DNA from: Paragordius varius
Lineage: Eukaryota; Animalia; Nematomorpha
Length of the DNA: 64,000 bases
Reading direction: 5' to 3'
Assembly (NCBI GenBank): GCA_964247055.1
Contig: OZ176050.1
Location: forward strand, 9,610,001-9,674,000
Part shown: positions 9,311-64,000 of the stretch, one piece after another
How the letters are laid out: every line of letters starts with the position of its first letter
Position numbering within the stretch: position 1 is the stretch's first letter
Position numbers and translations under genes: made by a program
The notes under the pieces: model-generated
Databases searched by the model: none
Seen by the model: the letters and a program-made list of their open reading frames with translations, nothing else
Told to the model about the DNA's origin: nothing

Positions 9311-10520
9311 ATGAGATGAAAGCAGCAGACGCCTAATAAGTTCTGTAACGAGACAGGTTGTCCCAAACCGCTCTAAAAACATGAATGTAATAATAATAAG
9401 TGAAATTTGATTTATATCCAAACTGTTTAATGATTTAAAGTTTAATAAAACTATTAAAAATATTATAATAAATAAATATTTTGCGTTTCCCAAGTACCAT
9501 ATTGTTAACTTGCAAAGATGAGGAGATAATATAAGAAATGTGAAATGAATTCATTCGGTTTTTTAGGGTTTATATATACTAATTTTAGTTGTACATAATT
9601 TGCATTATATCAATAAAATTTCAAGTAACAAAGGATATACTATTTACATAGTACACAAAAAATATAGAAAATAATACAATTCAAATAGCGGTGAAAGTTA
9701 TGATACACAACCAAGGTATGTATTTCACATTTGCATGTAACACAGAAAATTATGATATAAAAACAAAGTATATCTTTCAGATTTGCATAACACATATCTA
9801 AAAAACAATGGTTTTTGACCCGTTTATCAATACTGTTTTTCACTATCTTACCTGGTGAATGACTCTACAAATGTCTTATAAGTACATTATAGAAAAGTGC
9901 ATTTTATATTCTACAAACATTGCAATTCTAAAGTGAGAGTTTTGCCAAAATTTAAAGAGGCACTAAAAGCTAGAATACTAATGGTTTTTATGGTACTTTC
10001 AAGCTAAACAAAAGTTATTAAACTCTTTCACTTTGCTGCAAAAAAAACCATTTTCATCCCATACAGAAATAAACTACAGCATATATATATTAAATTTGCT
10101 AAAATAAAACAGAAAATTAAAAATAATGTATTTATGACCACAGTTCAGGAATATTGTCTGTGAAAATAAATATATTACACGACATATATGTATTCCAACT
10201 TTTGTTGTAAAGTTTGTTTGCCTAGTTTGTTATATTGTTTTTAAACCAGCCAGACAATACCTAATATATTAATGTATATGCTACAAAATTTGTTTTAACT
10301 ATTTTGAAAAAGTATAAATTGTAGAATCTTAACTCTAGTAATACTGATCAATTTTTAATTTTTTACAAATTCCAAACTTGTCTCTTATATTTTATTTAAG
10401 TATGACAATTACATTAATTATGCATAAATTAATCTAATAATCTTAAAATGGAATGCAAGCGAAATTATAATCAAATGCGTGCTTCAATTTATAAATCTGA
10501 GTGATTCAAATTTTATAGTG

Positions 10521-13025
10521 ATGGATAATCACACAATCAGAAATAATTACCCAAGGGAATTTCTATTCATCCCATCAGTAAATGCAACACAGTTTTTTTC
10601 TTTCAACTATTCGAATGATTATCATATAACGTTTTCAACTACTCCCTCAATATCGTTCGTTTGGCATTATTATAATTGGATTCATGATGTTCATATTTTA
10701 AACCAACAACAAATTTTGTTGAATAAATCAAACGGCAATTTTGTGGCAAATATTTCTGAAGAGGAGGCTAGTATGGATCGTTGCTTGTTGAAAAAAACTT
10801 TATACACCAATTCAAGTTATTTATATGCCGAACATAATGGCCATTTGATCCATTTGAGTAATGTTTGCATACTGTTGGCATTAGTTTTACCTCTAACATA
10901 TTATCGCGATTCGGTCTATCGCTTTTTCTTAGGTCTTGGATGTCTAATAAATGTCCTATGGTGGCTCCTTAACTATGACAATAATATGAATCAAAATGTA
11001 GCCACACTTACAAATAATTTTATCGACAATGATGATTTGAGCAGTAATGTGTCGCTATCAAGCGTTTTTTATTTGAATGACACTCTTTCGGTAAAAAATC
11101 ATAAACTTCATAACTATTCAACCATTCTTATATCTTTGCTTAACCATACCGATATTGACTATATAATTTGGAATATGTGTTTTGTTATAATCAATTTTTT
11201 GTATCTAACTCATATAATTTATGGATTGCTTAGAGCCCTGTTGGCTAATCCAACTATTAAAAACTTTTACGCCACCAATCTTTTACCACTGGGATTAAAG
11301 TATGGAGATTGTAAAAGCCTACTTAACCATGCTAATGTAATAGCTTTTGTAAATGATTGTACCAATATTAATAACTGTAACGGCCGTGAGAGCGTCTATA
11401 AAATCAAAAATGGGGATAAAGAACGGCTTAACCATAATAATAATTTATACCATAGTTATGTAGCCTGGAATGCCGCCAAAATCTCTGTTAACATAAGAAA
11501 ACAGTCATCAGATGATATCAAAGATATTCGATTGAAATATAAAATTGGACATTTGAATAGAACTAGGGATGGAATTTTACAGATTGATTCAAACACACTG
11601 TATTATTTGATTGAAGGAGAGTAATATATAAATCATATATGAGTGGCGAAACTTATACAGTAAAAACTGAAATTATACGGACAAAACGTAAAAACATTAA
11701 GGCAAATATTTTTTTAAAAGACAACCATGCTTTTAAAATATTTCTCATATAAATTTTATAATTACAATTTTAAAATGTATAATTAATTGTGTGACCAATA
11801 TAGATATCAATTCTGTATTATGCAATATGAAACAATAATAATATTTAAACTTAAAAAAGTATGGTTGTCTTTTGAAAAAAAAATTTTGTCTTTATATTTT
11901 TACGTTTTGCCCGTATAATTTCAATTTTTACTGAATGTTTTTGAAACAAATCGTGTTATTTTGAAATTAAAAAAATCGTGATCCTTGTGTTCGCATAAAG
12001 ATCGACACTATCATATACAATTTGTTATTTTAAATTATAAATAAAAAGAGAAACGGGTAATATGTTGTTTTTTATGAACACTCAGGATAGACAGGAAGAA
12101 CTGTTTTTATGAAGAACCACAAACCTTTAAATAAAAAAACACTGCGGTCTTGCACATTTTTTTATAAAACAATTTTAAACTTTTACAATAGATTTTATGG
12201 TTTATGTGGTTATGTTCTTGCGGTTGTTTAATCACCTTCCATCAAAAAATAGTATATGTAATTCTTAAAAAAGATCCACATATTAGATCGTTAGGACAAA
12301 AAACAACGAAATTGGAACCAATATTTTTGGCAAAAAACATAAACTATAAATAAAAAATTTTATGCAATAGAAACCGGGCCCGCTTTTTAAATTATGTGTA
12401 AACAGTATCAGACGCAAAATAAATAGACTAGAAAAAGTATTCAGATTTAAATCCCTGGTTTAAATTTAGTGATGTTTTTGTAAAACAATTGGGATTAAAC
12501 AAAAAGTTTATTTGTTATATAATGTGTAATTTAATTAAAAAAATTTATAATTAGTTCAAAATTTGTTGCTTTAAATTACAAAGAGATTTATTAGTAGTGT
12601 TATATAGGGATTTTTTAATGATTTTAACACATATATTTTCGACCAGGATTCAAATGTGTCTGAAACCAGGTCCAAAAATAATTTTAACCATAAAAGCTAA
12701 TGCTTTTGTTAATTCGTTTGAATGGAATTCCATGTCTTTGAAGCACGACAAGGCCACGTTCCATCACAGTTTGGACAAGAAAATGCAACATACAGAATCC
12801 ACAACTCATGAAGACAATAATTTAATTAAGGTAATTTAACGTTTTATCATAATAAGTAATTATTATTTAAAGTATATTATTGCTACAGAATACGTAATTG
12901 TTGTGTGTTGGAAACCATGTAATTGGTCCAATTGGTCAAAGATGGATCGTTTAAGGATGCAAACCTTGCTTCAAGACGATATGACAAAGAAATTATATGA
13001 AATTCAACAAAATTTAGAAGGATGA
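10521..13025 (+). CDS. BVES: Popeye domain-containing protein (BVES/POPDC-like), divergent
   Basis: Exons 10521-11620, 12647-12830, 12873-13025. TM1-2 HLSNVCILLALVLP...FLGLGCLINVLWW; TM3 DYIIWNMCFVIINFLYLTHIIY (cf. [22 protein letters not shown]); spliced LIEGE|IQM...TIKANAFVNSFEW (cf. NIYPCAFIDSPEF) and VIVVCW...LLQDDMTKKLYEI (cf. RFLCW...LIGKDITNKLYSL). POPDC1/2/3 subtype not resolved. Confidence 0.85.
11658..11933. mobile_element. MITE in POPDC intron 1
   Basis: TIRs CAGTAAAAACTGAAATTATACGG / CCGTATAATTTCAATTTTTACTG; left flank TA. Confidence 0.7.
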
Positions 13026-36304: not shown

Positions 36305-39300
36305 TTAGCCTGTAGATGATTCAGCATCCAAATATAAAGATTCAATGAATGATGCATACTTTCTTACAATAAAGGGTCGCCTTAATTTCATGGTCGGACC
36401 TAAATAAAAAGAGATATGTAATTTTTTTAAAAATAATCCTCAGATAAAATACGTAACCCAAAACAAAAATTATGTTCTATCACAAATAAATTTAGGCAGC
36501 TCAACTAAAAATCTAGCGTTATTTAATATTAAAAATGTTATAAAAACCCAATTCTCCCCCAGGTATCGTAAAATCGTGAGGCAGAATCGTCCAACGTTTA
36601 ACGGTTGCGGCATGACTAACCGCTTTTTTATTAGCCTTTTCAATACACGCATCAATGTGTCGACGCAATGCAAATGGGATTTTATCTATGACTGCATATG
36701 AATTCACATCTTCAAGATTGAATTCACTGTTTTCACCTGTAAAATAGATGTGCAATCAAAAGTTAAAAAAAACATAAGTGATGAAAATGATATGGTACAA
36801 AAGTATAGTAAAAAATAATTTTTTGTGCACAAGTTTTTTTAAACAAAAATTATTTAAATGATTATCAAAGACACGTATATTTAAAAGATATAAATTTGAT
36901 TTGAAATATATTTTGTTTGAAAAAGTAAGAAGAATAAAACTACTGTTTATTTAATAATAAGAACCAAGATATATTACCATTGTAATGACCATTAATGTAT
37001 CCATTGGAAAAATTTGTTCTAGTGGAATTACTAGTTTCATCAATATTAGAAATGGAAGATTTGTTTGTATGAATTATATTCTTAACAACTTTACTAGCTT
37101 CCTGAGTCAATTGGCTTAAGGGTAAACCTGTGGTAGGATCAACTTCAGCCTACATACAATATTAATTTATTTTATATTTATTAACTAATCTTAAAAACTA
37201 TGTAGGAAAAAAATAATACTTTAAGCGTTAAAAGGGCATATAAAAATTTTCGGTAATCTCCAATCACCATGACATTACTAATGAAATGCGATAATTCTTG
37301 TTTGATGGCATTTTCAATTGGCACAGGTGCGACGTTTTCCCCTCCGGCTGTTATAATAATCTCTGTAAATATGTAAAACAAACATATATAAAATAATATA
37401 AAGACAACCAACCGAATAAAAGTAATAAAATTTCATGAAGAAAAATATAATATTTTGCATATAAATGCTCTATAAATACTTAAAATATATGATTTAGAAT
37501 GTCCGGGACGATTGAGGGACAAAAAGGTTAACAAAATTTGATTAATATTTAATGGCCTAAATTTAAAATTAAAAACCAATTAATATTTAAGTCAATAAGA
37601 GCCATGATATAAACTGTGACTCAATAAAATCTACCATAGAAAGGTCAAATAGTTATCTGCCAACTCTGTTCGTTAACTTAAAAGGTTTTACACCAAATAT
37701 GTTTTAAAAAATCACCTTTAAGCCGACCGGTTATAATGAGAAAAGGACCACCCGTTTTTGTATAAACAATTTTTCCCATGTCACCCGAATGAAACCAACC
37801 GTCATCATCAATAGATTCTTCCGTCATCTTTTTCATGTTGAGATAACCCATAAATATATGTCTACCCTTTATCCATACCTAAAATATACACATATAATTA
37901 ATTATATATATACCCTCATATATAGTCATAAATTTAAAAATATTATAAATTTCGAGATTTACCTCGCCTTCATGTGTTGATTTTATAATATAGGGATCTG
38001 TTGGTATTGATGCGATTTCCGTGATAACTTTATCATTTATTGGAGACCCTAATATGGAAATCGCAATTTTACAAACATGTTCACATAACCAAAAAGTTAC
38101 TCTAAAACTAATAAAATTCGGAAATATTGGGTTGTACTTTACAGTAAATACCATATTAAAGCATAAATAAAAAATTGTGTGCATACAAGTTTTCCTTATA
38201 AGTTGCACATTTAAGTCCGATTCAACAAAAAAAATCGAAATTTAATTTGGCTTAACCAATATAAAACGGTTTAAACCAATAATATTACCATTATTCCCTG
38301 TCAAGGGTTCTTGTTGCGGGCTAGCGCGCAACTCAGAAATCTTTATTAACGTGCCTGAGAGAGGGAGTCCACAACTGCCCAACCAATTTGTTCCTAGGGC
38401 CGTGTAATTTACGGAAACAGGCCCGGTACATTCACTTGCCCCATAAATTTGGTGAATGGGAATACCAAGCCGAGCAAAGAAGTCTAAACAGGCCCGTGAG
38501 CAAGGAGCCCCCGTGCTCACAAAATAACGGCATTGATGGAGACCAAGAGCCTTACGAATCCGGGAAAATACGGCGTGATAAGCCACGGCTGATCCCCAAG
38601 GAAGTGGTTCTCTGTGTGCATAAAAGTCCATGTATTTTAAAAAAAAAGTAGTAATTGTCAGTTTTATTTGACGGCAAGTTTTTTTAGATTCACAAAGCTT
38701 AAATTAATCAAATAAATGATTATGGAAAAAGTACAGATAATATGATCAAAAACTTTTTGTTGTTAATTTTAGGACATAGCCTGTAATATTTTTTCAGATG
38801 CATTCTTACTACAAATCATTTTTTTAATACAATAATTTTGTCTTTCTTTTGTCAATTCCACCATATATTTATTACATGTAAAGAAAGTTAATAAAATATT
38901 TTAGTTGAAAAAATTAATATAAAATATAAAAAAATTGGATTATATACCCTAACATTGTGGCCTTAGTTCCATACTCGCCAATGGTCTTGGCCCACTCCAT
39001 TATGAAAAGTCTAATACCTCTGGCATTTTGGCTCGCGGCTGTTAGTTTATCACTGATTTTTTCCCAAACCCGAGGTACACCACAAAATATGGTAGGTTCA
39101 ACCTCTTTAAGCGAATCAACTAATGTACCCTAAAAATATTGACTTTAAATTAAACAGTAATTCGTTATAAACGTTTGCAGATAGCCATTAAATATAAATA
39201 TATACATATTAACGCTTTCTAATATAAATTACAAATTTTCGAAACTATTAATGGAAAGTTTTTGGAAAATAATTGATCAAATGTTTTTATGTTAATTTCT

Positions 39301-42007
39301 AATACTTTAAGTGCATCCGGTTGGGCAAACCAGACAGAGGATGCACAATCTAACATGACATACATGTCCAACATTTGAGCAGCGATGTGACTCAAGGGTA
39401 AATAGCTAACGATTCTTTCACCAGCCATTTTACATTCAATATCGTATGTTGTAGCCTGAGCCGTCCAAATTAACTAATATATCATAAAAATAAATTAAGG
39501 TAATATTGCTATAACTACTCAAAATGATTTTTAATATTCACCATTTTTATAAAGATAAAGTTTGTCAAAAATATAAAAATTTACGTTATCATGGCTAATC
39601 ATGACACCTTTGGAATTTCCAGTTGTTCCAGACGTGTAAATTAGAGTACAACAATTGTTTGGCTTTAAACTATCCATGATGCTATTCAAAGTTGGAGTGG
39701 AAACTTGATTTTCATATTTTCCAAGATCAGACCACTAATCGTGTTTTAAAACAGATTCAGTATTTATATAAATGTTGATTAATTGAAAGCGAGAATGATT
39801 AATTATAGTTTATACCATTTACACTTTAAATTTGCCTTTAAACATTAAAATTTAACCATTCCTTTCAAATTCACCCTAAAAATAAATTGTGCGTCCGCGC
39901 TAATAAAACTCGCAGTACATATTAAATATGAAAGATTCCATAATTAGCAATTAATAATAATAAAAAGTTCGGTAAGGCCTAAAACTAACATTTAAAGATG
40001 ATAATAGACCAAAAACGCACTTATTTTCAGTGTAATTCAACATTAAGGGTACGTTATTTAAATGAAAAATTTAAAGCGTTTAAACTGAATTTAAAGTGTA
40101 AATGGTAGGTACATCAAAGATATAAATCATGCTGCATTTATTGTTTTATCGATACTATATATCTCATATATCATGCGTGCGCTAAATATTGCAAACAAAC
40201 CTTAATAATTTTGATATTGTGATGCCTGACCAAACTTTCATATGTGGCCAAGTGATTGAGACTGATATCCTTGTAATAAATGATGGCTTTAAGGTGTGGT
40301 AAAACATTTTGGCTAACTACATCACTGTTAATAGTGTCGTCAGTAGTGTGCGTTGTATTGATGTTATTGTTTCGAATGATAGACAAAATTTTGGCAAGAT
40401 GCGTTTCATCATCCACAACGCAAATGTTAGCTTGACAATCCTGTAAAATGTGTTTGCATGCCTCAGAGCTGTTTGTCGTATAAATTCCGGCGGAAAGACC
40501 ACTTTATAAGCAGAACATATTATAAGGAAAGTAAGAATAAATGCCAATAAATATACAAATAAACCAGAGCTCTTCTTATTTGAATGGTATATCTATTAAA
40601 AACTTTTGCAAAAGCAGACATTCACAAAAATACGGTTAAAATGTGACATTATTAAGGGAGCGTGTATACGTAGCTTAAATATAAAAACGGATTTTTGCCA
40701 AGTTTAATATAACAAATTATACAACACTTATTATAGAGTATAAACTGGTCAAATATTCAACGCAATATAAATCTTGATAAAATTTATGATGATATATAAC
40801 GTTATGCACATATCATTATAGTATTCAAAATGCGGAAATGGTAAAATTAGTGGTTATTAATTTTTTGGGACAATTTAAATAATTTCAAATATTCAAAATT
40901 ATTTTTGAGATTACGCTGATAGGTATATAATAATAGTAACATCTTATAATTGTTAATTAATTATAAAAAAACTAAATATTGGAAAAGGATTTGTTTTTAT
41001 TTTTTGTAAAAAAAACGGTTTCAGACATAATGGCTCTTCAAATTTCCTTTTTTGGTTAAACTGTGATTTAGCATTAAAATTTATAACATTTCATGTAAAC
41101 AAAATATAAAGTCGCGTTTGAGCTAAATTTCTCTTAATTTGTATCACATACTTTGAGATTAAACTAATAAAAGCAAATAAATGGTATAAAATAATTGTAA
41201 GGTATAAAAAATTCCAAAACGGTTTTAAGGATCAGAGTTCATAACTGTTTAGGACCTATTACGGTTGCAAAACCATACCAAAAAAGTTAAGGGTAGTGCT
41301 GAATGATTGTAATTTATTTATGAAATATTTATTATAGTAAAAAAAATAACAATAATTAATTAAACATCATATCAATTATAATTTATATAATATAAAATTA
41401 CCCAGCAAAAATAGCAGAAAAATTGGAGATAAACCATTCAGGAGAATTAAATCCAAGGATACAAACACCATGGTACCTTTCCAGTCCAAGCTACATAATT
41501 AAATTTTATAATAATGTTTAATGGAAAGAGAATTTTTCAAAAAAATATTCTACAATGAAAAACTTTAATTTCATATAAATCTTTTGCAATCCGTTAAAAG
41601 ATTAATAAAAAATTTATATATATATATATATATATATTACAAAAAAAGTAAGCATATAAATTTTATTAATGGACTAATAAAGAATCCTAATGCTACACTA
41701 TAAACATGACTAAAAATTATAGCATTGCACCAAAGCAAAATTTTAAATACAAGGTCACCCATTTCTTATAAGTGATCCATATATATATATATATATATAT
41801 ATATATCATTTACAATTCAAATTTACCCTCAAAAAAATATATTAAGATTAAAAATTACCTCAATTTTTTTATATATTTAAAAAATAAAAATTTTGTTTTA
41901 AATTAAAATAATACTGAAAAAATAATTAACTATGCCATAAAGATATATTTCATATTATATTAGTTGGAAAACATATAATTTATTTTTGGGTGAATTTGAA
42001 TTGTAAA

Positions 42008-42069
<62 letters not shown>

Positions 42070-43101
42070 GCATAATCGATAGAAAAATTTAATATACCGC
42101 TAAAAAGGCTTTGGCAACTTTTATGACTTCATCGTAATACTGTTTAAAAGTTAATGTAATCCATGGCGTTTGGACATTACTTTTGTCATTTTGATGTACA
42201 TTGCCTGCTTTGAAGCTTAATGCAGGAGATGACCCATATTGAGCGACAATTTGTCCAAACCTTTGTGGAACAGTTAGGGGAGCAAGTAATTTTATTTTAT
42301 TGTATTTGTTGTTAGAAATATTGAAATTATTAGAATAATCGGATTTGTTAGCAAAAATAGGGCCAAAACGGTGTTCGTCAAGTTTTAACCCATCGAGATT
42401 AATGTTTTCTGTTGATGTAAAAGTTGTGTCCATTTGTTCCCAAAGTGTAGTATCAATGTGCGCTAAACCATTTGGTAATGTGTTTCGGTAAGTGGGGTGC
42501 ATTTTGTTTGCTACATCACCTGAAATATTGCTATTATTGCCGATATCCCAATTATGTGCGGTTTCTGGTTCTGAATAATTTTGTGGGATTTTATCCAAAT
42601 TGGATTTCCTAGTCTCTGTTGGTATTTTTGGTTGAATGTTTGAGGCATCAAAATAAACATCGGAAGTTGGGTGAGATAAAAAGGTTTCTTTGCTATTATT
42701 TTCGGGATCGAAAGATGTATTTAAATCATTCTTAGGTAGAGCATGATCTACAACGTGCATTAAGGATTGCGTTGAGTGAGGGATTAATTGCCCAAAATTT
42801 GTTTTATTAGTAGGCTCAAGATTATAAATAACAGAATCGGTTTTATCGTAATTTGATTCATTTAACATTTGCCCATTCTCATAAACAGCATTAGAATCGT
42901 CACTATTGGTGCCATTTGAATGGTAACATCCATTGGTTAGGACGACGCTTTCGACATCATTTTGACTTTTTGAATGTTTCAATGACATTGGCATAGAAGT
43001 GTTTTCAGCATTTCCAACATTGTCAAAGCTGGTGGATGAATATTTATTGCTGTAAAGTGATAGAGACTCATCTGTAACAACATGTCCATTGGATCTAATA
43101 C
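36305..43101 (-). CDS. ACSBG: Long-chain-fatty-acid--CoA ligase ACSBG family, paralog 2 (start codon probably in an unidentified upstream exon)
   Basis: Exons 43101-42098, 41490-41402 (GFNSPEWF), 40501-40201, 39734-39585 ([13 protein letters not shown]), 39473-39306 ([11 protein letters not shown]), 39129-38948 (GVPRVWEK), 38613-38289, 38048-37963, 37878-37716 (GWFHSGDMG), 37362-37220, 37149-36978, 36736-36548, 36399-36305; phases consistent. Confidence 0.93.
39815..40105. mobile_element. TA-flanked MITE (CCATTTACACTT family) in an ACSBG-2 intron
   Basis: TA|CCATTTACACTTTAAATT ... AATTTAAAGTGTAAATGG|TA. Confidence 0.8.
41806..42010. mobile_element. MITE of the same family embedded in (TA)n
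   Basis: TCATTTACAATTCAAATTTACCC ... GGGTGAATTTGAATTGTAAATGA, flanked by TA runs on both sides. Confidence 0.75.
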
Positions 43102-45597: not shown

Positions 45598-48500
45598 ATG
45601 TCACAAGAAAATTCGCATACACCTCTGTCCAATGGATTCGTTGGTCACGATACAATATTGGCTAGTAAGTTTTTTTAATGATTATTGCATCATAGCTAAA
45701 AATCGATAATATATTACTTATTTCACCAGAATAACCGTATTTTTAACTATTCCTTTTTAATGTTAGCTGCAGATTCGTATACGAGCAGTGATCCAACTCA
45801 GCCTGTATTGATACGAACAAATCTTGACGAAAAAAATGATTCCATTCCTAAAACGGGTACATATTTTTTTCATCAACCAGTAATTTTACGCTAAAAATAT
45901 ATAAAGCAATATATTTTTATTCTTACATGATTTTTTTTTAAAAAATTTGCTGGCTATCATTATATTTATTTATGCGAATATATTAAAAAAATGTATGTTT
46001 TTTGTTTAGACCAATTTATAACGGTACCCCAAAGATTTATACAAATTGCCCAAAAATATCCCACAAACATTGCATTTCATTATCAACCCTATGATGAAAC
46101 TGAAAAAAATACGACTTCAGACCAACAAATTAAACGGTCATGGTCTACTGTCACATACAAAGAATATCTCCAAAATGTTCGGAATACAGCAAAAGCTTTT
46201 ATCGCAGTAAGAAAATTTTTTTTTAAATTAATATTATAAACAAAATTTGGTTTGTTAATTAATCATTATCTTTTTTTCGTATTGAATATATATCAACACA
46301 TAACATATATTTTTTAAAAACTGATTGTAAAACTGACTGACCTTCCAGTTTTTTCCCAGATATATTTTTATATTAAAAATTGACTGATTATCTGTTATAA
46401 AAATTCTTTGCTTGTGATTGATTTTGGCAGACAAAAATAAATATTTATAAGTTTTTACAAAATATTTATAATATATACATAAGGAAAAAATAAACCAATT
46501 TTAATTAATTATAATCATAGTCAGTCTATTTGCACTAAATTGATAAAAAATTGGACCATATTTAAGTAACTGAAAATTTATATTTTAGTTAGGTTTACAA
46601 CCTAAACACTCCGTTGGTATAATCGGTTTCAATTCGCCTGAATGGTTTTACTCCAATTTTGGTGCAATCTTTGCCGGGTAAATTTTTGCTAATTTTTGTT
46701 ATCCCAATTAAAATTTAAACCACTTCAAGCTTTTCTGTTATTATACAGAATTAAAATCCTATAAAAATGAAATTGGCTTGGAATGAAGTTTTTTAATAAA
46801 CCAATTTGTATTAATTTAGCCCGTTCCAAAGTTTTAATTTACAACTCCTGATCTTAATGCTTTGCTTTTAAGTTGTGTTATTATCTGTCAATAATTTAAC
46901 TGTTTTTAATTATAAATTACTTTTCAAGAGCTTATACACTGGTTAACTCGCCTACAATGATTTTATTTTGGCAAAAAATATATGGCCCATTTTTGCATCA
47001 TTACCCTTTTTCTATAACAATAAAACATTGAAATTTATTTAATTATTAATATTTCTTTTTATTTATAACAATATTGAATAATTTATCATAACTAGGACCT
47101 TATATCAATTGCCGAAGAGTGCATGATAATAAACATAAGCCAATTTATCAAGCGCTCTTTTTAAAATAAACGCATTCAAATTTTTTCCTGTTGCCCTTTT
47201 ATGTTTTCTTATATATTCATTTTCTATATAAATGCGTGATGGTATAGTAGGTAGAGCGCCGGATTCTTGCATTGTGTGTGTGAAGTGCCAGAGTTTATAT
47301 TCCGAAACTTCGCAATTTTTCCATCCTCACTGTTAGCCCTTAGCAGGAGAGTGTTAAAACTTTCACAAGTCCTGATACAATAAGTTGTCATTATTTAATA
47401 AAAAAACCAAAAAAAGTGACTCTAAACTCATATATTTATTCATTATATATAGTGGTTTATCTACTGGCATCTATACAACAAATAATCCTGAAACATGTCT
47501 CCACGTTTTGTCGGACAGTGCGGCCGACATTGTCGTAGTTGAAGATGATTCTCAAATGGCCAAAATCCAAAAGATTAAAGATAAATTACCCAATCTCCGA
47601 GCCATTGTTCAATACAAAGGGACACCGAATCCCGTGCTAAATTCGACATCTCAACCAAATCTTACAACAGATTTATCTAGTCCCAAAATATTTAGTGTTT
47701 GTTCTTACACATATATTGATTGAATATTGCAACCGACTAGGAATCAAAAAATAACATTATCTTTAATTATTTATGCGATAATAACCTTATTTTTTATTAT
47801 TCTTGTCTATCTTTCAACATAAATATTATATACCATTTGCACTTCAAGAGTGTCCTTGAGCACTTCAAGTTGGTCGTTGAACAGTTCAAGTTGGTCCTTG
47901 AACAATTCAAGTTGGTCCTACATTTCAAGTTGGTCCTTGAACACTTTAAGTTGGTCCTTAAAATTTATAAATTTTGATTAAACCATAGTTTTTGCATTTA
48001 TTTTTTTATTTTATTATTTTTAACCTATTTTCTTTATTTATTGTATATTCATTTAAAATTAAAATTTTTTATTGAAAAACCACTTTTTTGTTTCAAACTA
48101 TTTTTTTTCAATTGAACAAAATTATTTGACTTTTAATAATGAAAAATTTTAATTTATACCCAGAAAACTTATATATTTTTTGATTTCGTGTTAAAATCTT
48201 ATAAATATCCAAAATTATTTAAGGAATTAATAAAGATATACGATTTTTCAAAGATTAAAAGTTGATATCGATTTAAAATTTATGTTAAATAATAAAAAAT
48301 AGGAAAATAATAAAATAGATGAATTATTTACGATTTGATTGATAAAAGTTAAAAACAAAACAAAAAAGTCAAAGGACCAACTTGAAGTGTTGAAGGACCA
48401 ATTTGAACTCAAGGATCAACTTGAACTGTTCAAGGACCAACTTGAATTGTTCAAGGACCAACTTAAAATGTTCAAGGACCAACTTGAAGTGTTCAAGGAC

Positions 48501-51500
48501 ACTCTTGAAGTGCAAATGGTATATTGAAGATTTTCATTGAAAAGTAGCGTAGAATAAGTTTTTGATAATTTGTTACTATTTTTGACTAACTATTACATTC
48601 TATTAATGAGGCATCTGTAAAATTAAAAAATAACCGAATAACAACTTAACCAAAATGAAACCCAAATCAAAATTTTTTGCGCAAATGTGGTAAACTACTT
48701 TTTTCCCAAAACTTTTTTTCACAGGATTAATTTAGAATGTTTTTTTTTAAAAAAATATGGACTCGGAACTGAATACGGTTCCAGCACATATTCAATGTTT
48801 TTATATAATACTCCACTTAAATATTGTCGATAATTACCCATTTTTTTATATGTCATAATTATAGTGGAAAGATTTTATTGAGCTGCATGTTACGATATCA
48901 GACGCCGAACTTGATGAAAGACTTAATTATTTATATGCTAATATGTGTTGTTCTCTCATCTACACATCTGGTACGACAGGAAACCCTAAGGGTGTTATGA
49001 TAAGCCATGATAATGTAAAAAATGTTTTATAATAGTTTAACAATCTTAAATATTTTACATTTTTGTTTTCATACTATTTACATGAGTTATTTTGTTGAAA
49101 AAGAAAAATATGTTAATTAGACATGTATAAATTTGTTGGTTTTTTCCTGCTTATTAAAACATATTATCAATAATATGACTTGCTATTAATATAGTTTAAA
49201 TTTATTTTATGACATATATGTTTAACTGTTGTATAAATATACATTTAGGAGTTTTTTTAAAAAAAATAGATTATGTGGACGAAACAGGTTGCTAAAATGG
49301 TAGGTCTTAGGGTCGGTCAAGAAGTTCTTATGACATATTTGCCCTTGAGCCATATTGCAGCACAAATTGTGGATATGTATATGGTAATGGAAACGGCTAA
49401 TACATTATATTTTGCCCATCCTGACGTATTAAAAGTAAATTTTTTGAGCTTTACAATAGCGGGTAATTTGATATTTAATATAGTTTTGTAATTAGGAGTA
49501 TAAAAATAATAATATTTTTATAAAATCAAGATAGATTTATTTTTATATATGAGTTATATAAATGACTGTTATCTTTTTCCATAATCGCCATAATTGGTTG
49601 TTTCGGTCTTTTTGAATATTGAAACAAAAAAAAAACAAATATAATACTACTTATTTACATATATTAATTTTTTTTCATTATAAATTTAAAAAACGCTTAT
49701 AACCTAAAATATGGCTGTTAACTATGCTTCATACACATCTTAATTCCAATTTTTATATTGCGGAATTAGGGAACTTTAGTACAATATCTAAAGCACGTTA
49801 GACCAACTATATTTATTGGTGTGCCACGAGTTTGGGAGAAAATGGCTGAAAAAATGCAAGAAGTTGGTCGAAGTACGCGCGGAATAAAGAAAAAAATCGC
49901 TGATTGGGCAAAATCGATCGGTACCCAAGGCACTCGAGATTTAATGAAAGGGTATAATCATTTATTAGTTTAATAATTACGAGTATGACCAAAATTACTA
50001 ATTTTCCATTAAATATCGAGGGCAGTATGTAAAGTAAAGAGCAATATTATATTTTTAAACTTTTTCTTTTTTTACCAAAAATATTTCTCTTAACTTGTAA
50101 ATCCTACTAGCAATATATTTTACCCTACTTAAATTTACTAATTTTATGGATTAATGTTTAAAATTTTTAATTCATAATAAAATGAATATTTGTAGTCAAT
50201 TTCTATCGATATTATGTTTTGGTATTCTCTTACCTAGACATCCTATACCCTGGTCATGGGGATTAGCAAATGCACTAGTATTTCGTAAGATTCACAAAGC
50301 CCTTGGACTTGACCGATGTACATATATGGTTAGTACAGGGGCCCCTATCTCTTCGGAAACATTGGCTTATTTTAATGCTCTCAACATACGGATCATGCAA
50401 GTTTACGGTAAATTATAGGTTTTTCAAAAAATTTTATGGAATGAAAATCTCATAATATTGATCAGCATATAATTATTAGCGGTTTAAACTTTAGATTTTA
50501 AATTTGCGAATATAATACATCTTGCCCTTTTATTCGTCATGTTCTTATGAGTATTTTTGGCCTTGACTATGATTATATTTGATATGGATATGTATCCTAT
50601 ATATATAATGCTAAATTTATATTTTCCCTGTTTGCATGTTGCCTTTATAAGGATAAATTGAACCTGTAGTTAAATGGTTGAACATAAACATACATCATTT
50701 AATTCAACTGCCATACATAAAACAAAAATTAGGCATGAGTGAATGTACAGGTCCCGCCACATTAAATATTCCCATAACTGGCAAATTTTGGAATGGAAGT
50801 GTTGGATTAGCAATGGATGGCTCCCAAGTCAAAATCGATGATTCTCCTGATGACAATAGTCATAAAGAGGTAATTCCCCTTTTTTGTAATATTTCAAATT
50901 TTAATCCTTCAATATATACTATTTTTGAGGATTAGGTTATGATTTAAAGTTCATTTTCTTATATTTTTTATTTAGTTATGTTTACGTGGAAGGCATGTTT
51001 TTATGGGATACATACATAGGGACAAAGAAACAAGAGATATGATAGATAAAGACGGTTGGCTTAAAACCGGTGATCTTGGGGCTTTTCAAATTACAGAAAC
51101 TGGTGGACCCTTTGTTTACATTACTGGACGGATAAAAGGTAGATGAAATAATGAATGATTTAAATGGATTTAACTTTCTTTAAATATTTATCCAATATCG
51201 TGTTCAAATGAAACGCTTGTTTTTGTCCTCAGTTTTTATATTTTGGTTTTTTTATAATAACGGATATTATTCTTTTTTTTAAATTTGTTGACGAGAATAT
51301 AGAGTCTGCAAAATCATTTATCCTTAACTGTTAATCTTGTTAACGAAAACTTATTGTTTAGATGGTAAAAATGACTATAAATATTAATTAGATTCGAAAT
51401 TTTCAAAACATTGTTGTATTTTAATGCATTAAATAAAACAAGAAATAAAACCAATAAAATTCAAATAAAAAATAATTCATGGTTAAAATATATTTATTAT

Positions 51501-53139
51501 AAAAGATACTACCCCATTTCTAAAATTTTGGATATAATTTGTTTTAAATATTTAATTGCAGAATTAATAATTACGGCCGGTGGAGAAAACATTGCACCTG
51601 TTCCGATTGAAGATGCACTCAAAGAAGAGTTGCGTGATCTCATTAGCAATGCCATGGTTGTCGGGGATTACAAGAAATTTTTGTCCGTTTTACTTACGCT
51701 AAAGGTTATTAATTTTAGAAATTGACAATACTAAATTTTCAGTGTCAAACAATTATTCATGAAGAAATAATATAATCAAAACTAAAAATTATAAGATAAA
51801 CTGTAAAAACTTAAAAAAACTACTACTTTTTATAAAGAATAAATTTTTTTTTGATGCTTATTTTTCTATATCACGTAAAATGATTACGATTTCTTTGTTG
51901 GCTTAAATTTATAAGTATAAAATATTTGTTACTTTTAAAATTTGTCTTTGTAATTTTAGTTTCCTTAACATTGCCTTTTGCATTATATATTTTCTGAACC
52001 TACTAATTCTGCCTAAATTATGAATATTATTTATTTGCTGATTTCGCATCGAATTATTCTATATATATATTAGTAAAAAAGTTTCGTCAGAAATCCCAAT
52101 TGATGGAATTTCTACACTAACTTTTCATTATCACATTTGCCATTTAGTGTGAAACTGACCCAGTAACAAATATGCCATCAGATGACTTAACTCAAGGTGT
52201 TCGAGATTACCTTGTCCAGGTGTTGGAGAATTCGGATCATGGGATAACGCATGTTTCGGAAATTTGTGAACCTCAACATCCCTTACCCCCAAGATTCAAT
52301 GAAGCTATCCGACTTGCCATAAATCGTGTAAATGAACGCGCAGTGAGTCGAGCAGCCATGATACAGAAATGGAAATTTGTTCCTCGCGATTTTAGTGTCC
52401 CTGGAGGAGAATTAGGTAGTTAGCACAAAAAGTATAGTTTTGACTAGGTTCAACTTGTGTAACTATTTAATACATTAATAATACTTTTTATGCAGGAAAA
52501 ATGGTTTTGGCCGGCGATTGTCTATATCTATTCTAATCTCTATGGCCTAACTTTGATTTTGGGGCTACATTTACACCATTTTAAGATTGTTACCTTTATG
52601 ACCGATATTATATTTGTTACTATAGATGTAGTTGAATAATGAAGTAGATGTGCCATTTCGAAAAAAATATTAATATATAAGGGTAAAAGTTATGATGGGA
52701 ATACCTTTATTTGGCTAAAAAACTCGATATCGGGGTTCCTGAATACAGTTACGTCTATTTCTAAAAACATTCACTAGTTATTTTATAATCATTAGTTATA
52801 GTGAACAGCCAACTTTTATAATCTCAATGGTTTGAAAAGTACTATTGTAAATTTGCATAACTCGTATATTTTTTTCTAAATTAAGGCCCAACTCTAAAAC
52901 TTAGGAGACCTATTGTGTTAAAAATGTACGCAAATATTATCAATTCCCTCTATGACGAAAATAAGAATGCCTTACTGCAACCAGCGACTGATTATACCCA
53001 ATCAAATGGTGGAATGGAAAATACTTTTGTAGCGAATGGCCTGGAGAGTAACTCAACACATCATGTAGTTTCCAAAAAGTTTTTATCAACCGAAGACGTT
53101 AATCTAAAACATTCCGAAAGTTATATTACACACATTTAA
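45598..53139 (+). CDS. ACSBG: Long-chain-fatty-acid--CoA ligase ACSBG family, paralog 3 (complete)
   Basis: ATG 45598; exons 45598-45664, 45767-45856, 46010-46206, 46589-46677, 47453-47696, 48865-49014 ([11 protein letters not shown]), 49270-49434, 49770-49951, 50238-50407, 50733-50869, 50976-51138 (GWLKTGDLG), 51562-51704, 52148-52415, 52886-53139; GT-AG and in phase. Confidence 0.95.
47234..47313 (+). pseudogene. tRNA-derived relic or SINE head in an ACSBG-3 intron
   Basis: A-box-like TGGTATAGTAGGTAGAGCG; B box and cloverleaf degenerate. Confidence 0.3.
47833..48519. mobile_element. MITE with subterminal 21-bp tandem repeats, in an ACSBG-3 intron
   Basis: TA|CCATTTGCACTTCAAG ... CTTGAAGTGCAAATGG|TA; arrays of AAGGACCAACTTGAA(G/C)TGTTC, inverted on the two arms. 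Confidence 0.85.
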
Positions 53140-56655: not shown

Positions 56656-56734
56656 TTATGAAAACACCTAAAAATATCTACATTCATAAAAAATTAAAAA
56701 TTATAACCTTTAAAATGAACAACATTAAAAAATT

Positions 56735-56807
56735 GACTCTGTGGCCTAATGGATAAGGCGTCTGCCTCCGGAGCAGGAGATTGTGGGTTCGAGTCCCATC
56801 AGAGTCG
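56735..56807 (+). tRNA. tRNA-Arg (anticodon CCG)
   Basis: 73 nt GACTCTGTGGCCTAATGGATAAGGCGTCTGCCTCCGGAGCAGGAGATTGTGGGTTCGAGTCCCATCAGAGTCG; acceptor stem GACTCTG/CAGAGTC, A and B boxes intact, loop CTCCGGA, followed by a TTTTT terminator. Confidence 0.97.
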
Positions 56808-57037
56808 TTTTTGTTATTTTTATACTTTAAAACAGGCGATTCTTTAACAAATTGCTCCGGGGCCGCATTTTTGACTCCATAAATCGACATGTTTTTTTCT
56901 AGTTCGCCGGTCAGCAGAAAGATTCGGAAATTTGGTTGAGAAATTTAATTTTACTAATATGATGTGATCTTATTTTTCAAATTGTGGAATATGTATTTGG
57001 TGCTTTACCAGATTTTTCGTAGGCCGCACATAATATA

Positions 57038-58175: not shown

Positions 58176-59919
58176 GGGTGGGTGATAGAAAAAATTTTGA
58201 TTTGACTTGCAAGTTCAAGTCATGGCTTGCTTTCATGTGATAAAAAAATTTAACATTAGACCACTTAAGTCAAGCAAGAAATCTTGATTCGGAGGTGATA
58301 AAAAACCATATGATCAAGTAAAACTTATAGATTTTTCAAGTGTGGTGTAAGGCACACTTGACAGATTTTAAAATGTGTATAATTTTTTTTTGAAACTATT
58401 TTTGGATGTAATTTAGGCTCTATATGATATAATTTTTATCTGATATTTGAATTAACCTATTCTAATTGAGTGGATACAAAAGAGGATAATTTTTTAGATA
58501 AATCTGCTAATATTTAAGAACAATGCTTATAAAAATACGCTAAATATATCGATCGTGAACCTGCAAAATAATTTGATTTTCGAAAATTACTTAAATTTCA
58601 TAATTAAATATTAAGCCTATGAAATTTCAAATCTTCGTTTATAAACGCTAAAGGTTACTTCACTATTCACTAATGTCAAGATTTTATTTTATCATAAATT
58701 TATATTGAATGTAATGTACACAATCAATTAAAAATAATAAAATGTTATATTGTATAAACATCTTCCCATTATATTTGCAAAACTCCTAACAAAATGAATA
58801 GTGTGGTAAAATAAGGAGTGTTTTAAGGGCGAATGTTTTATCAACTTAAAAATTATTGTAGGGCTCAATATTTAGAGAAATCCATCATATTAAATAAGAT
58901 ACGTGTTACTGAGTTTGAAAAACTTTAATAAATGCATATTGTATTAATTGCTTATCTTTTTGTGCCTTATTTCATAAATTTAAAATTTAAATTGGCAAAA
59001 AATGTTATATTCACAAGCAAAAGACTTGACTTAAGCGTTTTTTTATCACCGATCTTCAAGTGTAACATTTATTTGCCACCCAATTCGAATTTTACGCAAA
59101 TTATTTTGATTAATTTCAGCCAAAATTTATGAAATAAGGCACAAAAAGATAAACAATTAATACAATATGCATCTATTAAAGTTTTTCAAACTCAGTAACA
59201 CGTATCTTATTTAATATGATGGATTTCTCTAAATATTGAGCCCTACAATAATTTTTAAGTTGATAAAACATTCGCCCTTAAAACACTCTTTATTTTACCA
59301 CACTATTCATTTTGTTAGGAGTCCATTTGCAAATCTAATGTAAAGATGTTTATACAAGTATAACATTTTATTATTTTTAATTGATTATGTACATTATATT
59401 CGATAAAAATTTATGATGAAATAAATTCTTTACATTAGTGAATAGTGAAGTAACCTATAGCGTTTAAACCAAGATTTGAAATTTCATAGGCTTAATATTT
59501 AATTATGAAATTTAAGTAATTCGAGAATCAAATTTTTTTGCAGGTTCACGATCGATATATTTAGCATATTTTTATATATTAGCAGATTTATCTAAAAATT
59601 ATCCTCTTTTGTATCCACTCAATTAGAATAGGTTAATTAGCCAAATATCAGATAAAAATTATATCATATAAAGCCTAAATTACATCCATAAATAGTTTCA
59701 AAAAAAATTATACATATTTTAAAACCTGTCAAGTGTGCCCTACACCACACTTGAAAAATCTATTAGCTTTACTTGGTCATATGATTTTTTATCACCTCCC
59801 ATTCAAGTTTTCTTGCTTGACTTAAGTCGTTTAACGTTATATATTTTTTATCACATGAAAGCAAGCCATGACTTGAAGAACTTGTAAGTCAAGTCAAAAA
59901 AATTTTTATCACCACACCC
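58176..59919. mobile_element. Large fold-back palindrome (arms of about 800 bp)
   Basis: GGGTGGGTGATAGAAAAAATT...CATGGCTTGCTTTCATG mirrored by CATGAAAGCAAGCCATG...TTTATCACCACACCC; arms complementary nearly throughout; no TSD seen. Confidence 0.8.
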
Positions 59920-61570
59920 AATATTTTTTTTATAATTTTATAAAGGTGCTCTACATAGCTGGCGCTCAATTAGCCCCTCTATTTAGCCGCTCCCGCCGTA
60001 AAATTAATTTTTTTTGGAAAAAAATAAATCCCTAAAAATATATTTGAAGCCATTTTCACAAAAGTTATGAGACTATGTAAAATGAAGTTTTAGACATGCA
60101 GAATAAGGGTGAAATATTAGCCCAATGTTTTTTATAACCGCTGAGCGTTAGATCTGTGCGACTATATATAAATAACCTATCTTTGAAGCAAATTATAATA
60201 AAATCATCAAGAATTTAATTAAACGCTTTTATAAATAAGGTGGTTAGGCCTAGTCCTATGTTAAATATGCCAACATAAGTAGTTTTGAACATTTTCAGAA
60301 AGTTTATGGGACCATAATAATTAGGGAATTATAAATTAAGTTTTAGTATATAAAATAAGCTTCATCTCATGAACAATCTTCTATTCAATTTAATATAAGG
60401 TGTACTGCGCAAAAACTATTTTTTTCAATAAGAGCTAAAAATTACTTATGATATCAGAGTACAAAATTGGGATCAGAAAAAAATATCCTCGTGTATTAAA
60501 TATATTCTGACTTTGGGGCCTTAATAAGAAAAATATTCTTTTGTGCCAATTGCTGCATTTCAAAAAATTGCAAAATTAGCATACATTATAATAAAACCTT
60601 TTTTGGTGAAATAGATGTGTTATTTCATAAATATCATATCATAAAATACATTACAAAGGGTTTATATTAAATTTTTTATCCCGAACTCTAAGACTCCCAT
60701 AACCTACTTAAATTAATAAACAATTTTTGTATCAATTTAAAAAACAAATCAGCATCTTCGAATTTTATGAGGCCATTTTAGAATATCTTAAAATATTATT
60801 CTACCGTTTTCAACACGCTTCAAAATATCATTACCTACGCTTTAAGAAAATTTTGCTAAAAATTGAATATTTAATATATGTATATTTTAAAATAACATTT
60901 TTTTAATGTCATAATCTAGCACATATTAAAACGCGCATCGGTATTTTTCTGTTTATTTTGAGAAAGGCCATACTAAAGAAGCGCGAAACTTTACTTTAGG
61001 ACATATCTAAAAATTAAAATATATTATAAATATCGGCATACTTTTCAATTTTTTCAAATATTTTTCGAAATGAACCAGTTATCTTACTAAAGAATTTTAT
61101 TTGGTTAATTTTGCGACTTTCCATACAAAGCAATTAGCACAAAAGTATATTATTTTTAACAAATAACTCATAACCCAAAACCAGCGAATGAGAATTTTGC
61201 GACATTAACTATCAGAATATAAATATATATATATATATATATATTTCATCGAGATTTTTTTGCGTGCACTGTGCATATAAAAAGTTTCGATAAAATTGTT
61301 CAATAATTATCATCACTCTATTTATAAAGTCAGTTGCCCAAAAGGTAACGGGGTCCCATTATTTGATACACTATATACATAGCATATATGCATAAGATAA
61401 TAATAAATGCCAATAACAAATAATTTCGGACTCTTTTAATTAAATAAGCATTCATTGCAAAAAATTTGGTATAAATTATAATAATTTTTATGTAAATTTA
61501 TTTTATGGATAATGAATTAAATATTGCATAATTGAGTACTAAATATCCATATATCATTATAAGGTTGAGA

Positions 61571-63514
61571 CTAACGATCATTCAAACGACGCTTCTTATA
61601 TTCATGCCATTTATCAACAATCCATTCTCTTTGACTCCAAAGATATTTATCACCATATTTCCAATACCACCTAAATATTTACAAACATTATAAAGTTCAA
61701 GTATATCCAGCTAATAAATTGTAATATTAATTGACTAATTACACTCCAAAAGCCAAACCACCAAGATGGGCCGCATGATCAAACAATTTCCATTTCATTA
61801 TGATCCCCATAGTGTCAAAGATAAGCATGGCCTTTAAAGCCTAATTTAGAGAGTAGTAAAAAATAAAATATAATTAAAATTGAAGAAGTGATTAAAATTT
61901 TATAAATAAAAAAATACTTGTCTCTATACGCTACTTTAATAATTACTTGCATTTTAATTTTTATTAGGAAAGACAATAAAAACACACTGATAACTTTTTA
62001 GACAATATTTCGATGAAAAATGAGAACTATACCGTAAAAGCTGAAAAAGTGAAGGTAGGCAGAAATATGAGGGAGAGTTCTGCATTTGGATATTCCATGC
62101 ATACAACTCCGACCATAGCCATGAGTGCACCCGAGGCCCCCATAGATAAAGCTCGAGATTGGTTCAACACTTTTAGGGCATAACTTGTGAGGGATGAAAA
62201 TGTACCTACAAAATAGTTTTGGTAAAACCATATAGCGTAAATTATATATCAAAAAGGTTTTTACATAAAAAATTCGATTTTTAAATATATATCAAAACTA
62301 AGGCATAACCTATAATTTAGAACAATAGGTAAAAACAATATGGGCATTAAATAATAGATTTTATGGAAAGGAGTATGGAAAGTGATAAGGTTATATATTT
62401 TAATGGACTTGGACAAATTTTAAATATATGAAAAATTTTATAATTAAGAGCAGTAAAATAATAATTATCAACTTATAAGTCTTAACATTACCAGCCATTA
62501 AAAAGAAAGCTAGAAATTGTTCGCGTCCCATTATGTGCATTGTAGGATAGCTAAATGAGTACAACGCAATCATATTAAAAATTAAATGCCAGGCATTGTA
62601 ATGGCTAAAGGTTGAAAGTAACATGGAAAGTGTAGGGACGCCTAACAATACAAAAAATACATACAATGAACACTTTCGCGCAAAATGGTAGTCAAATATT
62701 AAAATTGTTATTATTTAAAATAAATTTTAAAATATTGGGAAACACTTGTTTTCTAATATGAATAAGTATTATAGAAAATTTGATTATTTTTGTTTAAGGA
62801 ATCCAAAGTTAAAAGCTTTTAAGTAAACTTAAATTTTCATAAGATTATATTTTTGTTATCAACGTTTTATCATGCATTAAATTATCTTGTCTATCAATCG
62901 ATCCACAAAAATATCATGATCATTGACATTCAATGTAAAGTAACCAAAAACATCCCAAAAAATTTTAAATTTGTATTATTTTCAATACAACACCATTAAA
63001 TTAATATTCATTTTTGTTAAACCTTGACGGGGATGAGATCCTAAATATTTAACCATCATTGGATATAACTTTGAAATATGCCATAGACAAAAAACACCGA
63101 AATTCATTCCCATTAAAAATACTATTAACTTTTCCTCGTTCTTTAACTCCCTATTCCATAGTTCTGAAATCTATTTATAAATTTATCAAACTTGTTGCCT
63201 AAATTCCCCAAATTTTGGAAAACCAGTATCAACAACTTTTATTTGTTTCTTAAGATTTTCATATTGCCAAATACCGCATCCTGCTATTGAAACACCAGAA
63301 ACCTATAACAATTTAAAATTAATTGTACCATAACGAAAAAACCGAACGGTTTTATAAGATCCGCGAATTTTAGAGTTTCATTGCTTGGGTCTCTGATTTT
63401 AGAGGGTAAAATATCGATTTTGTTATCTTTAACTGTTTTAAAAAATCTTAAAATTGATGAATTATTTTTGAACACTTTGAAAAACTTGAACAATCCCACA
63501 GTTGGCCGTATCAT
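61571..63514 (-). CDS. PARL: Presenilin-associated rhomboid-like mitochondrial protease
   Basis: Exons 63514-63329, 63302-63192 (GIWQYENLK), 63170-63023 (VFCLW), 62641-62492 (MLLSTFSHY...HLIFNM), 62205-62033 (catalytic GASGA), 61840-61743 (FDHAAHLGG), 61670-61571. Basic, acid-poor N-terminus fits a mitochondrial presequence. Confidence 0.96.
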
Positions 63515-63541
63515 TCATAGCTTCTCAGATGATATATAAGA

Positions 63542-64000
63542 ATGCAGGATTTATTCAATACTGTCAAAGGAAAAGCTTTGGGCATCGCTGATTTTTTAAC
63601 ACCAGTTCTTAAAGTACTGTTACTTTTTTATTTCATAGGAATCAAAGTTTAAAGAGACTGGTGTGATTACACCTGAAGAGGTATATTTTGTTCTCCAATT
63701 AATCTTATTAGTTTGTGATCGCCGGAGATCATTTGGTTCATCAATGTCCTACGTGGTCTTGGGCTATTGGTGAAACAGCCAAATCAAAATCTTATTTGCC
63801 TTCTAATAAACAATATCTTGTTACTAGAAATGGTAAAATTTAGCATATAATTTATATAGTTCCTTGTTATGATATGAAAAAATTCTCAGTTATGAAGGAA
63901 AAATGTAGAAGATTGGATGAAAATGATGATCAAGAATGGGTTGAAGCTTTTTACCAGTCTGGTTTGTATTTATTTAATATTTAGAAGAAGAAACGTCTCC
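63542..64000 (+). CDS. ATG3: Autophagy E2-like enzyme ATG3 (5' part; continues beyond the window)
   Basis: [24 protein letters not shown]|[14 protein letters not shown]|[18 protein letters not shown]...[14 protein letters not shown]|PCY...EWVEAFYQS; exons 63542-63613, 63639-63680, 63712-63832, 63860-63961, 63985 onward. Confidence 0.97.

Follow-up and report, generated by a model that had tools for sequence, protein, structure and literature searches.

The 3′ end of the analysed 64,000-nucleotide stretch of Paragordius varius DNA, hereafter the window, holds the first part of an ATG3 gene on the forward strand and, head to head with it on the reverse strand, a PARL gene. The coding sequences start at 63542 (+) and 63514 (−). 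Because only 27 nt lie between the two starts, either the 5′ untranslated regions are very short or the two transcripts overlap. The ATG3 coding sequence comprises five exon pieces separated by four segments of 23 to 31 nt, each bounded by GT and TAG (Table 1). The window covers the first 117 codons; the remaining two thirds of the protein, with the catalytic cysteine (HPC motif) and the C-terminal domain, lie beyond base 64000.

Table 1. Coordinates of the ATG3 and PARL features in the window, with the lengths of introns found at the orthologous ATG3 positions of five other animals
Feature	Position	Strand	Description	Orthologous position in other animals
ATG3 exon 1	63542–63613	+	24 codons from the start codon	
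ATG3 intron 1	63614–63638	+	25 nt, GTACTG...CATAG, phase 0, between K24 and E25	After coding nt 72, phase 0: Limulus 2311 nt, Nematostella 168 nt, Branchiostoma 344 nt, Tribolium 54 nt, Anisakis none
ATG3 exon 2	63639–63680	+	42 nt, 14 codons	
ATG3 intron 2	63681–63711	+	31 nt, GTATAT...ATTAG, phase 0, between E38 and F39	After coding nt 114, phase 0: Limulus 1673 nt, Nematostella 1655 nt; Branchiostoma, Tribolium and Anisakis none
ATG3 exon 3	63712–63832	+	121 nt, 40 residues and the first base of V79	
ATG3 intron 3	63833–63859	+	27 nt, GTAAAA...ATATAG, phase 1, inside codon 79	After coding nt 235, phase 1: Limulus 6049 nt, Nematostella 424 nt, Branchiostoma 529 nt; Tribolium and Anisakis none
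ATG3 exon 4	63860–63961	+	102 nt, the rest of V79, 33 residues and the first base of codon 113	
ATG3 intron 4	63962–63984	+	23 nt, GTTTGT...ATTTAG, phase 1, eight codons after a conserved W	After coding nt 337 (343 in Limulus), phase 1: Limulus 1803 nt; Nematostella, Branchiostoma, Tribolium and Anisakis none
ATG3 exon 5, start (EEETS...)	63985–64000	+	Cut at the window end, 16 nt seen	
ATG3 exon 1 polymorphisms	63586, 63601		Both synonymous	
ATG3 exon 3 polymorphisms	63771, 63810, 63802		63771 and 63810 synonymous; 63802 S to P	
ATG3 exon 4 polymorphisms	63885, 63935, 63936		63885 synonymous; 63935 and 63936 in one codon, E to G	
PARL candidate micro-intron 1	63303–63328	−	26 nt	
PARL candidate micro-intron 2	63171–63191	−	21 nt	
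PARL rhomboid-domain stretches	62403–62666, 62030–62170, 61742–61828	−	Pfam PF01694 positions 7–54, 66–99 and 107–134, colinear	

Translation of the ATG3 exons joined without the four segments yields 117 open codons, whereas the unspliced reading frame is full of stops. A blastp search with the joined N-terminus returned ATG3 proteins of chelicerates, fish, molluscs and other animals at 57–64% identity over 106–123 aligned columns (E ~1e-48 to 1e-51), with ~63% identity both to Limulus and to fish. The alignment extends from residue 1 to residue ~113–117 and passes through all four junctions. A first-pass annotation of this DNA, made from its letters alone, had claimed that the N-terminus reads through only after four removals and that the product closely matches the conserved ATG3 N-terminus; both claims are borne out, the second from end to end and with E-values of ~1e-50.

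The individual exon pieces support the same assignment. Exon 1 aligns with residues 1–24 of Limulus ATG3 and 3–26 of Actinia ATG3, and exon 2, the part in which the N-terminus is best conserved, matches Actinia at all 14 of its residues (100%) and Limulus at 93% of them. The exon 3 piece is recognised by the Pfam family Autophagy_act_C (PF03987, E=1e-7) and, among human ATG3 structures, matches chain 8fkm_A with 29 of 40 residues identical (E=1e-15). The VPCY and GWV/EWV motifs of exon 4 line up colinearly with those of other ATG3 proteins when the joined N-terminus is aligned by blastp. The visible sequence comprises the N-terminal region and the start of the Autophagy_act_C domain expected of ATG3, the E2-like enzyme for ATG8 lipidation. 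The GC content is 35% in the ATG3 exons and 19% in the four introns, against 27.9% in the window.

The spliced product is colinear with ATG3 proteins from hundreds of animals. Exon pieces 1–3 abut on the Actinia and Limulus proteins with neither gap nor overlap, so that no residue is gained or lost at junctions 1–3. These junctions are flanked by conserved residues (LK|ESKF, PEE|FV and TRN|VPCY), and a shift of any of them by a single codon would remove or insert conserved positions. MAFFT misplaced the short exon 4 piece on both reference proteins; the blastp alignment of the joined N-terminus covers junction 4.

The coordinates and lengths of the four segments in the first-pass annotation proved exact to the base. 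The donor is GTA in three introns and GTT in one, and the acceptor is TAG in all four. Retention of intron 1, 2, 3 or 4 alone leads to a premature stop at codon 37, 69, 82 or 120, respectively; retained intron 2 shifts the frame, and retained intron 3 brings in an in-frame TAG four codons past the junction. With GT and AG each found at ~4% of window positions, the chance of meeting both at four fixed orthologous junctions is ~8e-12. All four introns contain A residues 4–17 nt from the 3′ end in a T-rich context, a sample of four being too small to define a motif. Their lengths are far below those usual in animals, as had been remarked. Compared with the sub-30-nt class of animal introns (~20–30 nt), three of the four fall within its range (23, 25 and 27 nt) and one measures 31 nt.

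The donor of intron 4 is fixed, and its acceptor is a tandem TAG|AAG|AAG (63984–63990) at which introns of 23, 26 or 29 nt would all preserve the frame; the 16 nt of exon 5 cannot tell these acceptors apart. The site is of the NAGNAG type and could yield protein variants that differ by one or two glutamates.

We threaded the annotated ATG3 proteins of Limulus, Nematostella, Branchiostoma, Tribolium and Anisakis exactly onto their own genomic loci. Position and phase are shared with Limulus for all four introns, with Nematostella for three, with Branchiostoma for two and with Tribolium for one, Anisakis sharing none. The intron 4 donor coincides with the site and phase of the Limulus intron (WVDTHHYT|E versus WVEAFYQS|E), both lying eight codons after the conserved W. 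Because position and phase are orthologous, we interpret the four segments as shrunken ancestral introns, neither insertions nor errors. This interpretation agrees with the first-pass view of the segments as genuine introns of the ATG3 gene, given their GT..AG bounds, the breaking of the frame by each of them and the identical phase at four ancestral positions. We consider it highly probable that they are genuine U2-type GT–AG introns of a functional ATG3 gene, which would descend from an intron-rich ancestral animal gene and would have shrunk to 23–31 nt.

The locus is present in four public runs (X1–X4, from two samples) as genomic unitigs, in which the segments are kept and ATG3 occurs without splice-type joints. 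In the interval 63000–64000, the contigs placed from these four runs show no insertion or deletion relative to the window. A 292-nt contig of the second sample (S2), which is ~3.6% diverged from the window, runs through introns 3 and 4 with 10 substitutions and 0 gaps. Since this contig spans both introns gap-free, introns 3 and 4 are not collapsed and keep their lengths across diverged individuals. For introns 1 and 2, coverage comes from sample S1 alone (runs X1 and X2), possibly the assembly's own sample, which leaves some room for an assembly artefact, that is, for longer introns having been collapsed or for the short segments being assembly errors. We give very little credence to an artefact: besides the absence of indels across both samples and the S2 bridge, a collapse would not leave exact, frame-restoring GT..AG units at four orthologous positions. 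The first-pass annotation had named longer introns in the raw reads as the observation that would overturn it; no indel was found, and the bridge from an independent sample applies to introns 3 and 4 only.

The same contigs bear on the idea that the segments are removed from the DNA itself, by programmed elimination resembling that of ciliate internal eliminated sequences (IESs), or from the RNA by a non-spliceosomal endonuclease and ligase. The shortest ciliate IESs are similar in size to the ATG3 segments; otherwise nothing specific speaks for DNA elimination. The bounds are GT..AG rather than TA..TA, spliceosomal introns of other animals occupy the orthologous positions, and genomic contigs derived from whole-animal DNA keep the segments. 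We attach practically no credence to removal by either route.

Within 60373–62758 and 63727–64000, the only places matched by contigs of S2 (X3 and X4) are short blocks corresponding to exons, with 3–4% divergence. The DNA between these blocks is less than 95% alike, and the two samples, which carry one species label, are strongly diverged.

Of the eight exonic differences between individuals in ATG3, five fall at third positions and are synonymous when read in the spliced frames, whose genomic register is not the same from exon to exon. Though few in number, these differences are consistent with purifying selection acting on the spliced frame. They also bear on the proposal that this is a decaying or silent copy of ATG3, a pseudogene or a redundant paralogue, from which the segments are never removed. 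Such a copy would be compatible with the lack of a detected transcript and with a view confined to the first 117 codons. The proposal has to reckon with a spliced frame that stays open over 117 codons even though stops are frequent in DNA of 28% GC, with 57–64% identity to distant animals, with mostly synonymous differences between individuals and with eight of eight splice dinucleotides intact. We see only a small chance that the copy is silent.

We searched for transcripts and closer homologues in several ways. The RNA-labelled runs for the organism contained a fraction of 0.00 of the sampled sequence words, and none of the 343 proteins fetched was a near-identical, transcript-derived ATG3. 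Two profile searches with the exon pieces of the window each returned, among the best 120 matches listed, no ATG3 more than 64% identical to the N-terminus. With the 40-residue exon 3 as query, only two short fragments were recovered, and a representative search gave only fragments and distant ATG3 proteins. Spliced 30-mers of junctions 1|2 and 2|3 had no match in JGI metagenome contigs.

The first-pass suggestion that the spliceosome of this animal copes with introns of ~21–31 nt appears reasonable on comparative evidence; that the RNA is cut at the ATG3 junctions, and how efficiently, we likewise infer. In our proposed mechanism, each intron would be recognised as a unit, by intron definition, within conventional U2-dependent splicing. 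The 5′ signal would be a minimal GTA or GTT, the branch point an A located between a few and ~17 nt before the 3′ end, within the A/T-rich body, and the acceptor the first TAG after the branch-point A. Excision would be precise to the nucleotide, since gaining or losing a single base would ruin a strongly conserved protein. One element of the first-pass annotation does not survive, namely the use of a bypassed TAG, 11 nt into intron 3, to place the minimum intron length between 11 and 21 nt. This TAG is uninformative, since (i) an AG so near the donor comes before any usable branch point, or coincides with it, and would be skipped by any spliceosome, and (ii) the only ground for its non-use is that using it would create a stop codon.

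The introns could be real and nonetheless be spliced inefficiently or alternatively, either through skipping of exon 2 (joining 63613 to 63712) or through frequent intron retention. Exon 2 is a 42-nt exon between two micro-introns, and the removal of 98 nt that would skip it keeps the frame. In microsporidia, the splicing efficiency of extremely short introns has a median of ~25%, as cited in PMC13644364, and the premature stop caused by each retention would make the retained products removable by nonsense-mediated decay. Against skipping stands the conservation of exon 2, as seen in its identity to Actinia and Limulus: because this is the most conserved stretch of the N-terminus, an ATG3 form that contains exon 2 must be made. 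We regard substantial inefficient or alternative splicing as rather unlikely, and very probably the four segments are introns of a functional gene.

We also carried out a census over the whole window of all GT..AG segments of 15–60 nt that join two open frames. The counts did not exceed those obtained with 11 control dinucleotide pairs, nor did they peak at 21–31 nt. As random open frames of at least 14 codons are common, this census does not discriminate and speaks neither for nor against a short-intron class; the statistical support that the window offers for such a class is limited to the homology-anchored cases.

The neighbouring PARL gene contributes two candidate micro-introns, across which its N-terminal part can be read (Table 1). 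The junction of the first was chosen by reference to what we take to be the human PARL sequence. An alternative placement of this intron at 63284–63309 was dropped in favour of the homology-supported choice, a case which illustrates that open frames alone do not fix junctions. Ordinary introns of ~200–380 nt separate the three rhomboid-domain stretches of PARL. Because the gene carries candidates of 21 and 26 nt followed by introns of ~200–380 nt, the same spliceosome would have to process both sizes.

Among 51 metazoans, introns below 30 bp have been described in two lineages only, Dicyema and the myxobolids, both highly reduced parasites, and further cases were predicted (PMC13644364, MBE, September 2026). 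The median intron measures 27 bp in Henneguya salminicola and 22 bp in Thelohanellus kitauei and Myxobolus rasmusseni (PMC13644364). Hadjez et al. reported for myxobolids and Dicyema a 'GTa' donor, little beyond AG at the 3′ end and a weakly conserved upstream A, together with conserved U2 snRNA and U2AF and conventional U2 splicing (PMC13644364); the mechanism proposed above for ATG3 agrees with this description. The first-pass annotation had listed ciliates, nucleomorphs, microsporidia and dicyemids as the main bearers of such introns; that list is incomplete, as it omits the myxobolid Myxozoa with their medians of 22–27 bp (PMC13644364). As myxobolid introns had already been published, the short ATG3 introns are less unprecedented than it had implied.

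The myxobolid introns resemble those of ATG3 in being GT–AG animal introns of 20–30 nt at conserved ancestral positions between conserved exons, with a donor reduced to GTa, a 3′ signal of little beyond AG and A residues a few nt before the AG. Both hosts are AT-rich, with 29.1% GC in Henneguya and 27.9% in the window. In contrast, myxobolids have compact, fast-evolving parasite genomes in which the short class supplies the median intron, whereas the ATG3 protein of the window is slow-evolving and the adjacent PARL mixes introns of 21–26 nt with introns of ~200–380 nt. A further difference is the fourth intron position of the window, which is common to Limulus and absent from Nematostella. Together with the slow evolution of ATG3, this position weakly favours a bilaterian over a myxozoan.

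In Dicyema japonicum, introns average 38 bp and most are shorter than 30 bp (PMC6736024, PMC13644364). This animal shares with the window a bilaterian affiliation, GT–AG introns below 30 nt, a reduced 'GTa' donor and a repeat-rich genome (49% repeats). It differs in its GC content (36.7%, against 27.9% in the window), in its very fast-evolving proteins and in having nearly all of its introns short. Ciliate micro-introns of ~25 nt in Paramecium and 15–16 nt in Stentor are given in PMC5014332, as relayed by PMC13644364. Ciliate and nucleomorph introns cover the same size range, and their retention causes a frameshift or an in-frame stop, as does that of all four ATG3 introns; these organisms are unicellular and all their introns are tiny, whereas the window belongs to an animal with ordinary introns as well. 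The 'ultra-short' introns of humans measure 43–65 nt (PMC4463651) and, as outlined in 10.1101/784868, use special factors such as SPF45. Like the ATG3 introns, they mark the bottom of the size range that their own spliceosome handles. They differ in being roughly double the length, in their rarity within the human genome and in their use of special factors.

The Gordionus genome paper reports a GC content of 26.93% and a BUSCO score of 71.6%, and never mentions introns. The 27.9% GC of the window is close to this value and to that of Henneguya (29.1%), and does not fit Dicyema (36.7%). Our literature search found no paper linking horsehair worms with short introns. We lean towards the view that the window comes from a third independent animal lineage with spliceosomal introns below 30 nt, probably Nematomorpha. 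In this lineage, unlike in dicyemids and myxobolids, micro-introns would occupy ancestral positions near the 5′ ends of slow-evolving genes, in a genome that is rich in repeats, not compact and also carries ordinary introns and introns of kilobase size. If a third lineage of this kind exists, intron miniaturisation would not be a by-product of genome compaction, and an otherwise ordinary animal spliceosome would process introns of 21–31 nt and of kilobase size in the same transcript.

The ATG3 locus offers a clean test case, with four consecutive micro-introns whose shrunken ancestry is legible from orthologous positions. Such genes will be broken by gene finders and RNA-seq aligners whose default minimum intron length is 20–40 nt or more, and this minimum may contribute to the low BUSCO scores of hairworms, such as that of Gordionus.

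The remainder of the window holds several further features. The interval 58200–60000 is a very high-copy repeat, with a summed contig word depth of 1e5–3e5 against 300–600 in the flanking single-copy DNA in all four runs, and with the many internal joints and loose ends that are typical of a transposon family. A tRNA-Arg gene (anticodon CCG) at 56734–56808 (+) was detected at 66 bits in Rfam and also by ARAGORN, near the place at which the first-pass annotation had put a FAM122/PABIR gene with micro-introns. Exon-like open frames at 38242–42994 (−) and 47385–51725 (+), judged by eye from their translations, appear to belong to acyl-CoA synthetase genes, perhaps of the bubblegum type; the two sets are divergent, with a few kb between them, and may represent a duplicated pair. 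A 301-residue open frame of the window is not recorded as a called gene. No open frame of the window is longer than that at 10479–11624 (+), which encodes 381 residues and for which a protein-atlas look-up yielded only noise. Its N-terminal part is long and rich in asparagine, and is followed by a Popeye (POPDC1-3) domain (E=1e-11).
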